64,000 nt of DNA from the sequence record MW825358.1. One strand, written 5' to 3'. Within the stretch, counting starts at the first letter, position 1. Every line of letters starts with the position of its first letter. Positions 3,161 through 51,319 of the stretch are shown one piece after another. The notes beneath the pieces are model-generated. The model made no database searches and was not told the origin of the DNA. It worked only from the letters and a program-made list of their open reading frames with translations. The translations under genes were made by a program, and so were the position numbers.

Positions 3161-3187
3161 GCCCCTCCCGAAAGGGAGGGGCTTATG
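3161..3187. terminator. GC-rich hairpin followed by TTATG (member of dispersed family)
   Basis: GCCCCTCCC-GAAA-GGGAGGGGC-TTATG. Confidence 0.7.
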
Positions 3188-49929: not shown

Positions 49930-50169
49930 TCAACGGGAAAAGCGCTTGCGCGAGGGCTTGACCATCAAGTCCTCCACCGGATAGTTCTCGATAAAGGTGA
50001 CCATTTCACCTTCGGTCTTAAACGAGGCCAACACGACCCCGGTGCGGGTTTTGACCACCCGATGCGGTAACTGACTGGCGGGGGCGTGCTCGATGGTCAG
50101 ATACTTCTTTTTTATCTTGGCATTTTCCTTGGCAAGGGCAATGACACATGGACGTACAGCGGTGGACAT
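49930..50169 (-). CDS. Small basic hypothetical protein
   Basis: 79 aa, converges on the hairpin. Confidence 0.6.
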   Translation of the reverse strand: MSTAVRPCVIALAKENAKIKKKYLTIEHAPASQLPHRVVKTRTGVVLASFKTEGEMVTFIENYPVEDLMVKPSRKRFSR

Positions 50170-50280
50170 GGACGAAAATCCCTGATAGTAAAGCTAAGTG
50201 CTTGGAAAGGTTAGGAAAGTGGTCGAGACAGTACCCCATCTCACATGATGTACGTATTTTTTAACATAGAGAAGTGATGA

Positions 50281-50870
50281 TGTGGTGAAGGCCGGCGAAC
50301 CGATTCAGCTTACAGTTTCGACTGGAGTCTAGTAGCCCGTGGCACCAAGCGCCAGTTCATTCCTTGAACGGTTCGGTGCACTTTCTTGATATCTCCCACG
50401 CCAGTCCTTTTGAGGGCTCAGGCTGCACGACGCTACGTCGAATCCTAGGCAGACTCAGCGTCTGTCTCTTGAGAAAGTGCACCACTTCTTCGTGTTGAGA
50501 GTTTTCCCTCAGGCCGTTTTCCGGTCCGTCGCTAACTCTTTACAAAGCACTGCCGGACTTACGGTGTACCGGATCTCCAGTGCCTAGTTGGATAGCCACC
50601 CTGTGCGAAAGGGCATGCCTATCTGAAACCGTGTGTTCACCTATCGCAAGGTGGAAAGTTGTACGCGGCTTGTAGAACCTCGTAAGCTAGTCCAACAGGG
50701 CAGCGTTCGGGAAAGGCAGGATGTGGTGGACGCGTAAGCGACCGCAGTTCTGCTCGCCCGTGAAGCGAGTCAAAGTTTAGCAGCGTTACGTGTGCAGCCT
50801 ACAATGGCTTCTCTCGACGGAAGTGCACCTGTCCAGTTGAGGTCATTGTGGGAAGTGCAGGTAGGAAAGG
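50281..50870 (+). ncRNA. Candidate large structured ncRNA
   Basis: About 600 nt with no ORF in the track; many helices, UUCG and GNRA loops, a long-range pairing. Confidence 0.6.
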
Positions 50871-50934
50871 GGTGTGAGAGCCAGGGCTGGGCGGCCCTGG
50901 CTCTTATGCTGTCGATTCGTATAGGTTTGAAACC

Positions 50935-50949
50935 TGTATTATCTCAATG
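50935..50949 (+). promoter_or_regulatory. Putative phage-RNAP promoter box overlapping an ATG
   Basis: AAACC-TGTATTAT-CTC-AATG. Confidence 0.5.
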
Positions 50950-51255
50950 AGCACCACCCTCAGCAAAAGGGCCTTTATGCAGTATTTCGACCAGACCCTG
51001 CCTGTTCCGCGTACCGAAGTTGAAAAGATAAGAATCAATCAGTGGCGCGATGCACAGGCCCAAGGAAGAAAGCTTCACGCCAGCCTTGAGCGCGTTGCCT
51101 TCCATCAACACCTTACCATCCCAGGTCTTCAAACCGGACAGTGGTATCCTTTGTTGTTGACTGAGCTAGATCTGGTTGAACTGATTGTGGAAGGCAAGAC
51201 GTATATCCTGTCCTACCTCTATATCACCCGTTTCTTTAAGGTCGAGGTCCGGTAA
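50947..51255 (+). CDS. Hypothetical protein
   Basis: 102-aa ORF. Confidence 0.6.
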   Translation: MSTTLSKRAFMQYFDQTLPVPRTEVEKIRINQWRDAQAQGRKLHASLERVAFHQHLTIPGLQTGQWYPLLLTELDLVELIVEGKTYILSYLYITRFFKVEVR

Positions 51256-51319
51256 AGTCTTTTTTAACACACCAGGTAAATGGAGTGAGAGCCATGGCGG
51301 CTTGACCCTACCCTGGAGA

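Follow-up and report, generated by a model that had tools for sequence, protein, structure and literature searches.

What is encoded in the unannotated gap between LUCX_193 (− strand) and LUCX_194 (+ strand) of the Xanthomonas jumbo phage vB_XciM_LucasX (LucasX)? GenBank gives no annotation for this interval, which lies in the 64,000-nt stretch of DNA analyzed here (the window); window positions 50170-50950 match positions 174170-174950 of the 305.6 kb LucasX record MW825358.1 at 100% identity, and coordinates below are those of the window unless the record is named. LucasX carries five RNA polymerase subunit genes and encodes a tubulin-like protein (PMC9009655), and the window itself contains genes for paralogous phiKZ-type virion proteins and for a SNF2 helicase (virion-type) common to ~200 phiKZ-like phages; LucasX is a phiKZ-like jumbo phage. 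An earlier note, made from the letters of the window, had described 50281-50870 as a highly paired region of about 600 nt, free of open reading frames (ORFs), and had proposed that it is a large noncoding RNA (ncRNA) of an unrecognized class. Our analysis supports the core of this proposal and leads to an answer to which we give a probability of roughly 70%: the gap holds the gene for a stable, structured ncRNA of ~620-640 nt, representing a new family whose members belong to a clade of phiKZ-like jumbo phages.

Coding capacity, homologs and covariation

No ORF over 50281-50870 exceeds 52 amino acids, both strands considered, and the short ORFs of the region are not conserved; one of them, for example, turns into GTG-TAA in Xanthomonas phage RTH11. 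The + strand folds with a minimum free energy (MFE) of −258.7 kcal/mol and a z-score of −3.26 relative to shuffled sequences, the − strand reaching a z-score of −1.4, so that the description of an unannotated, ORF-free and highly paired region is borne out. The RNA unit is discrete, lies on the + strand and runs from ~50268 to ~50905-50909; the region first proposed is therefore real, but its limits had been drawn too narrowly, the unit being somewhat larger (~50268-50909). The RNA gene is present in one copy per genome.

By blastn against GenBank phages, a check that the earlier note had suggested, the sole relative is phage RTH11, where islands of ~84% identity fall in a syntenic, unannotated gap of 850 nt. 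Motif scans added the IMG/VR contig UViG_3300011559_000001 (310.9 kb) and two metagenome contigs, and ten more loci were found via a small protein encoded beside the RNA; ~ten metagenomic/Logan contigs are among the homologs, which are designated below by locus numbers (L152 and the like). Scans of IMG/VR with four patterns returned one true locus (L003), the remaining matches being due to chance. Alignments were made with E-INS-i (MAFFT) and with covariance models, of which R1 represents the 3′ domain (157 positions) and R2 the core (131 positions). R2 matches 13 loci with E-values from 4e-34 to 5e-5, and L164 weakly, while R1 matches all family members (E 1e-44 to 1e-5); Burkholderia phage FLC9 is matched by both models, in the core by R2 (E 1e-7) and in the 3′ hairpin by R1 (E 3e-5). 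LucasX itself scores 4e-29 with R2 and 2e-35 with R1 but is in both seeds, and the weight therefore rests on the independent members L161, L157/L158, L163 and FLC9; with R2, the non-seed members score 8e-22 (L161), 3e-7 to 6e-6 (L158/L157) and 5e-5 (L163).

The family's hosts are mostly uncultured giant phages. Among twelve cultured phiKZ-like genomes searched with R2, the RNA was found in three, namely LucasX, RTH11 and FLC9, and no R2 match was obtained in Noxifer, 201phi2-1, RAY, Eowyn, DT01, FLC1-1B, RP12, Phabio or HPP-Temi. R1 was also run on Noxifer, 201phi2-1, RAY and Eowyn, with FLC9 for comparison; 201phi2-1 is matched by neither model. When 185,579 species genomes of bacteria and archaea were scanned with a pattern for the 3′ domain, there were 19 matches, all due to chance and none passing R1. 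Within the family the RNA is far better conserved than its flanks: LUCX_193 and its RTH11 counterpart share 42% identity, LUCX_194 lacks an RTH11 homolog, and two contigs with 94% overall identity show 2 differences in ~700 nt of RNA versus 10-15 per 100 nt in the neighboring gene, a contrast to which a mosaic recombination history could contribute.

The evidence that carries the assignment is the retention of helices through sequence change. RNAalifold, applied to three sequences, found 40 pairs with compensatory changes. In the core (R2, 13 sequences), 87.6% of the alignment cells are paired, as against 32-43% when the partners are slid by 1-3 columns; 25 of the 31 pairs show changes on both sides, and the covariation score is 0.60 versus 0.12 for the best slid control. 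The corresponding figures for the 3′ domain are 93.7% versus 37-47%, changes on both sides in 28 of 50 pairs, and a score of 0.43 versus 0.13. The observed covariation values were reached by none of 500 shuffles in either domain. Conserved G-U pairs are frequent (core columns 115-153 form a G-U pair in 13/13 sequences) and on the opposite strand would become A-C mismatches, which identifies + as the RNA strand in LucasX, as had been proposed; the orientation of the promoter motif and the terminator agree. The architecture of the unit in LucasX is as follows.

50250-50267, + strand: promoter-type motif GTACGTATTTTTTAACAT, upstream of the RNA and conserved across the family
50274-50295, + strand: conserved 5′ segment GTGATGATGTGGTGAAGGCCGG; family consensus GAU[C/G]AUGUGG
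50296-50538, + strand: variable 5′ domain D1, from the LucasX MFE fold
50539-50672, + strand: conserved core, from R2 matches and covariation
50547-50583, + strand: hairpin a, with loop ACUUACGGUGUA at 50557-50568; compensatory changes
50590-50624, + strand: hairpin b, with a GCGA tetraloop at 50605-50608; covaries (GGAUAG/CUAUCU)
50631-50664, + strand: hairpin c, with an AUCGCA loop; compensatory changes
50560-50564 with 50629-50633, + strand: predicted pseudoknot between loop a and the CCGUG strand; N-N′ covariation
50673-50756, + strand: variable linker domain, including a CGC-GUAA-GCG hairpin
50757-50871, + strand: 3′ domain D3, from R1 matches and covariation
50761-50780, + strand: small hairpin of D3
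50787-50863, + strand: long bent hairpin of D3, GUGUGC-AG-CCU.. opposite ..GGG-AA-GUGCA, with apical loop GGAAGUGCAC
from 50860, + strand: purine-rich single strand GGUAGGAAAGGGGUGU
50874-50909, + strand: terminator hairpin followed by TATGC; stem covariation, and the same module elsewhere in the window

The core contains elements that recur across the family: the 12-nt loop of hairpin a (ACUNACGG), the strands AACCGUNCG and AAGUUGU, and the UCGCA loop of hairpin c. Hairpin b is capped in most members by a GNRA tetraloop, GCGA or GCAA, and AACCGU and AAGUUGUAC are conserved single strands. In the 3′ domain, the base of the long hairpin (GUGNGC-AG-CCU / GGG-AA-GURCA) is nearly invariant, including its 2x2 purine internal loop; the family signature here is GCAGCC facing GGAAGU, with the apical loop GGAAGNGCNC, and the purine-rich tail GGUAGGAAAGGGG is conserved as well. 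The LucasX RNA has the core motifs, the three covarying hairpins and the 3′ hairpin by which we propose to define the family.

A pseudoknot is predicted within the core, between an invariant ACGG in loop a and the equally invariant CCGU with which it can pair in the strand that follows. Beside them, the pair N-N′ reads A-A in seven sequences, U-G in LucasX and RTH11, U-A in L157 and L158, and G-C in the IMG/VR lineage and, independently, in FLC9, so that N′ differs from A only where N is able to pair. This pattern lends limited but real support to a conserved pseudoknot; the G-C state is incompatible with the outer helix of hairpin c.

Boundaries and variable parts of the unit

LucasX, RTH11 and the IMG/VR contig share one and the same conserved 5′ segment, to which those of L153, L154, L162 and L164 are related. 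In the LucasX fold, the D1 domain that follows it consists of a CGAACCG/CGGTTCG hairpin (50296-50375) and a helix of 12-14 bp (50375-50386/50472-50483) enclosing three small hairpins. Its length ranges from 63 nt in L162 to 275 nt in L163, and all that is left of it in FLC9 is a single small hairpin. When RTH11, the IMG/VR contig, L152 and L154 are folded separately by MFE, each has in this place a long helix of the GCGUGC../..GCACGC type. The linker varies likewise: RTH11 and the IMG/VR contig have 57 nt inserted in it, and the spacing between core and 3′ domain is 37 to ~190 nt across members.

Most of the helices listed in the earlier note are indeed in the sequence: CGAACCG/CGGTTCG, CAGT-TTCG-ACTG, the 12-bp GGTGCACTTTCT/AGAAAGTGCACC, AGGCAGAC/GTCTGTCT, GCACTG..CAGTGC around CCGG/CCGG, CACCT/AGGTG, CGC-GTAA-GCG and CTCGC/GCGAG. 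Those corresponding to hairpin a (GCACTG/CAGTGC with CCGG/CCGG) and hairpin c (CACCT/AGGTG) show compensatory changes in relatives, and positional analogs of the 12-bp helix appear when RTH11, the IMG/VR contig, L152, L153 and L154 are each folded by MFE. Three further proposals are not supported. The pairing TTGGA-TAGC/GCTA-TCCAA clashes with the covarying hairpin b (GGAUAG/CUAUCU). The long-range pseudoknot AGGCTGCAC/GTGCAGCCT (AGGCUGCAC/GUGCAGCCU as RNA) consists of 9-mers that are perfect in LucasX only, and the second partner thought to allow switching, GGAAGTGCACC (GGAAGUGCACC), is likewise confined to LucasX; for both, RTH11, the IMG/VR contig, L152 and L153 offer only chance-level complements of 5-7 nt in nonhomologous places, and GTGCAGCCT instead forms the 5′ side of a local hairpin that is conserved.

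Both ends of the unit carry signals that the earlier note had pointed to. The promoter-like AT tract at the 5′ boundary proved to be a family-conserved motif with the consensus GTA-T-run-(A/T)AC-A, and transcription probably starts a few bases 3′ of it. Its 15-mer ACGTATTTTTTAACA has two exact copies in the LucasX genome (the reversed control pattern has 0 matches), the second of them at positions 282276-282290 (−) of the LucasX record (locus L193:1977-1991), where it precedes LUCX_308, a large tail-fiber-like gene, by 40 nt in the same orientation. A near copy of the 15-mer, AAGTCTTTTTTAACA, was also seen at 51255-51269, directly after LUCX_194.

The hairpin-TATG element at the 3′ boundary is equally real, its stem being 100% paired in the family with compensatory changes in 11 of 14 pairs. 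About 30 intergenic sites in the window have the same form, a GC-rich hairpin with (T)TATG(C) a few bases after it; the stems are of 8-16 bp and often of CCCCTCC type (for example at 3184, 25466, 29059, 47833, 49408 and 52185 on the + strand, and 49872, 45675, 42780 and 32718 on the − strand), and such modules mark most of the window's intergenic boundaries. The element is therefore a general transcript-boundary module of the phage and not peculiar to the RNA; it serves genome-wide as a terminator module and is possibly combined with a late promoter. In phiKZ, the late-promoter motif is reportedly TATG. Together, promoter motif and terminator support a + strand transcription unit from ~50268 to ~50905.

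Genomic neighbors and the arrangement in phage FLC9

The gene nearest to the RNA on its 5′ side encodes a small basic protein that accompanies the RNA in much of the family.

49930-50169, − strand: LUCX_193, a 79-amino-acid (aa) basic protein with the C-terminal tail ..KPSRKRFSR, divergent from the RNA gene

The LUCX_193 family comprises proteins of 70-135 aa with the consensus ..KRKLV.I..V..S.LPYRV.KKRTGV.LGSFET......F.....L..L..KPTRR.. and a basic tail. An exhaustive profile search gathered 41 representative clusters; a word-index protein search with LUCX_193 returned only the protein itself. All contigs with enough flanking sequence have, upstream of the small gene, a divergent, gene-poor gap of 600-800 nt; SspB-like, MazG-like and SNF2 genes are often close by, and the gaps searched contain a covariance-model match opposite the small gene's strand in all but L194. 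The family has no match in Pfam. The confident AlphaFold2 (AF2) model of LUCX_193 (predicted local distance difference test, pLDDT, 85) has an alpha-beta-beta-beta-alpha topology, for which fold searches (Foldseek against PDB, VIA-wide PDB and AFDB clusters) gave nothing significant; weak matches to dsRBD-like, HicB-like and DUF2188 folds were treated as uninformative. We infer that the small protein is the best candidate for an RNA partner or regulator in the LucasX clade, the single basis being its conserved divergent adjacency.

L194, which carries P0041, the most distant small-protein homolog, has a 580-nt gene-free gap (837-1418) with a fold z-score of ~-3.3, in which TTCATTTTACACA resembles a promoter and the end is a hairpin-TATGCCGTC; the family core motifs are absent from this gap and no covariance model matches it, and it may contain a strongly diverged or a different RNA. 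The small gene of L194 is followed by a BubE-domain gene. In general, the genes near the RNA are those for small hypothetical proteins, SspB-like and MazG-like proteins and the SNF2 helicase. An SspB-like gene (ClpXP adaptor family, PF04386) is conserved at no more than 1-2 kb from the RNA in most members (L153, L154, L159, L162, L163, L164 and RTH11, L002:5045-5584), and MazG-like/dCMP-deaminase genes lie near some. In L157 (1871-2416) and L158 (924-1469), a 181-aa gene has been called antisense over the RNA core and 5′ domain, which is probably a spurious prediction prompted by the length of the ORF-free RNA gene.

Phage FLC9 shows a different arrangement. There the RNA begins 12 nt past the CCA of tRNA-Phe, the last of an array of eight tRNAs on the same strand, with GAUCAGGCGGG, the equivalent of the conserved 5′ segment, directly after that CCA; it has no promoter motif of its own and ends at a hairpin-TATGCC terminator. 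The FLC9 RNA is thus probably matured from the tRNA precursor. A LUCX_193-family profile found no homolog in the FLC9 genome, so the protein is not universally required, and the arrangement marks the RNA as the conserved entity and the protein and 5′ domain as accessory. The eight tRNAs, found by ARAGORN in L205 (LC667451.1 128141-129695), are seemingly unannotated there; the only annotation of the tRNA stretch, gp119 (a 57-aa hypothetical coding sequence), overlaps tRNA-Gln and is probably spurious.

Sequencing runs of DNA that contain the LucasX RNA sequence come from the LucasX source itself and, as low-depth LucasX-like fragments, from a freshwater metagenome and one other sample, which places LucasX-like phages also beyond the Brazilian soil source. 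The fragments, in runs X2 and X3, are 151-nt contigs near-identical to the LucasX RNA (50398-50548 and 50703-50853), with the variants 50518 T>C and, in the linker, 50748-50750 TTC>CCT.

Competing explanations and known RNAs

Searches for known classes were negative throughout. With Rfam 15 at the gathering score, the whole window yielded five tRNAs elsewhere and nothing in the LucasX RNA; at E ≤ 10, 50100-51000 gave only two noise matches, both on the terminator hairpin, and at E ≤ 0.5, nine homologous loci gave no match inside the RNA. ARAGORN found neither tRNA nor transfer-messenger RNA (tmRNA) in 50100-51000. The opinion that hallmarks of RNase P, group I/II introns and tmRNA are lacking is thereby upheld, as is the assignment to an unrecognized class, given the absence of Rfam and ARAGORN matches and the helices kept through compensatory changes in jumbo-phage homologs.

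Individual classes were considered in turn. For a group I intron, there is no Rfam match to the P3-P9 core (LucasX at E ≤ 10, nine loci at E ≤ 0.5). Rfam's group I model misses some phage subgroups and its negative is therefore not absolute; the context, with an own promoter motif and terminator, an upstream gene on the opposite strand and an unconserved downstream gene, also speaks against such an intron. A group II intron was rejected on the grounds of no Rfam match, ORFs of ≤ 52 aa within the region and no reverse transcriptase nearby, RNase P RNA on the lack of a match in LucasX and the nine loci (the purine-rich tail GGUAGGAAAGGGG resembles CR-I of RNase P only superficially and sits at the 3′ end), and tmRNA on the negative results of ARAGORN (50100-51000) and Rfam. 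ROOL, GOLLD, OLE and raiA, which the earlier note had named as comparisons to run, gave no covariance-model match in Rfam 15 at any threshold tried. As to mobile-element guide RNAs (IscB omega RNA/HEARO, TnpB reRNA, IS110 bridge RNA, retron msr-msd), the cognate enzyme genes are not among the neighbors, and HEARO has no Rfam match in LucasX. In the literature, no report of such an RNA was found, and papers mentioning LucasX are silent on the 50281-50870 region; transcriptomes of phiKZ and 201phi2-1 (ONT-cappable-seq) contain small RNAs only, <250 nt (PMC11512511), and a 2025 review of nucleus-forming phages does not mention noncoding RNA (PMC12908238).

We propose that the RNA would be freed as an independent transcript, or in FLC9 cut from the tRNA-array precursor instead, that it would fold into a compact tertiary structure, and that it would work in trans, with a structural or catalytic function of its own or as the RNA component of a ribonucleoprotein, the small basic protein being a candidate partner or regulator in the LucasX clade. 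A bolder version, that it is a new ribozyme or RNA machine of the nucleus-forming jumbo-phage lineage, with the core as active site or defined assembly and the protein as lineage cofactor, appears to us an unlikely, speculative extension. Another role would be in translation, with a stable RNA of the tRNA-operon type, matured by tRNA enzymes, acting on tRNA or the ribosome, for which the species 1 and 2 RNAs of phage T4 provide a precedent; the FLC9 RNA, 12 nt past the tRNA-Phe that ends the eight-tRNA array and lacking an own promoter, and the tRNA cluster of LucasX are in its favor, but in LucasX, in RTH11 and in every metagenomic member the RNA is preceded by a promoter of its own and is distant from tRNAs (by 30 kb in LucasX), no tRNA-like, tmRNA or RNase P features are present, and the context of one genome is thin evidence, which makes this role improbable. 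We also doubt that the RNA is a decoy or sponge that titrates a host RNA-binding factor or an RNA-sensing defense through single-stranded purine-rich/GGA motifs. The conserved unpaired GGUAGGAAAGGGG, the apical loop GGAAGUGCAC and GGGAAGU could serve in this way, and one report (10.1101/2022.06.20.496707) describes nucleus-forming phages as still open to RNA-targeting defenses; sponges, however, usually present repeated short sites, whereas here a single elaborate covarying fold with a pseudoknot and a GNRA loop is found, and no target was identified.

Two readings deny that a free RNA is made or selected. A cis-acting role, as leader or regulatory region of LUCX_194 or of the divergent small gene, would fit the region's location between two genes and a promoter region shared with the small gene's upstream region; yet a strong generic terminator precedes the next gene, LUCX_194 has no RTH11 homolog and the downstream genes vary by locus, the RNA runs away from the small gene, and FLC9 has neither neighbor, so that we regard a cis role as very unlikely. 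Still less credible is a DNA element (an origin or a packaging/recombination site) or a decayed intron or mobile remnant whose conservation is not driven by RNA, an idea that a long noncoding stretch, present as a single copy per genome in a jumbo phage with an unmapped origin, might prompt: covariation is present, with strand-specific G-U pairs, the helices outlast sequence change, and neither origin-type repeats nor a group I/II model match or exon context is found.

Several observations weigh against the preferred reading of a stable, trans-acting structured ncRNA. The sequencing runs containing the LucasX RNA sequence are of DNA only, so that transcription is something we infer. The covariation alignments were fitted to the models, which favors the structure, and several of the sequences are close relatives, though the margins over the controls are large. 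The pseudoknot and the outer helix of hairpin c share three bases, so that one of these two pairings may be incorrect or represent an alternative state. Against the protein as a partner, finally, stand the FLC9 RNA, which does without it, and the lack of a fold match pointing to RNA binding.

Large, elaborate ncRNAs without a known function are rare, and earlier classes of large RNA (RNase P, group I/II introns, OLE, GOLLD, ROOL, raiA) have each brought new biochemistry or a notable open problem; the present one would be the first large structured RNA reported for phiKZ-like phages. Members of the family occur in cultivable phages, LucasX and RTH11 (Xanthomonas) and FLC9 (Burkholderia glumae), the RNA offers handles in its clear boundaries, strong covariation, testable predicted pseudoknot and candidate protein partner, and natural minimal forms exist in FLC9 and L162, both with a reduced 5′ domain and the former also without the protein. 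These properties open the family to genetics, structure probing and cryo-electron microscopy (cryo-EM).

Among known phage RNAs, species 1 and 2 of T4 are stable RNAs of the tRNA cluster that are cotranscribed with tRNAs and released by tRNA enzymes, and their function is not known. Like the LucasX-type RNA they are phage-encoded, and their cotranscription with tRNAs parallels the FLC9 arrangement, but they are much smaller, and most LucasX-type RNAs lie away from tRNAs behind their own promoter. The small RNAs of phiKZ and 201phi2-1 (PMC11512511) likewise belong to nucleus-forming jumbo phages and share phage promoters and motif-bearing hairpin terminators, but are <250 nt and mostly derived from 5′ untranslated regions (UTRs), and 201phi2-1 has no match to R1 or R2. 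GOLLD and ROOL, large ornate ncRNAs often found in phages or prophages and the subject of cryo-EM work (10.1101/2024.12.08.627333), resemble the LucasX-type RNA in being ~600-nt, phage-encoded, stand-alone genes for multidomain RNAs with a pseudoknot, tetraloops and strong covariation; on either side the biochemical function is not known. In contrast, their models do not match the LucasX RNA, their motifs and architecture are unrelated to it, and they belong to phages of Lactobacillales and the rumen, whereas the LucasX-type RNA belongs to proteobacterial phiKZ-like jumbo phages and has, in most members, a specific small basic protein as its neighbor.

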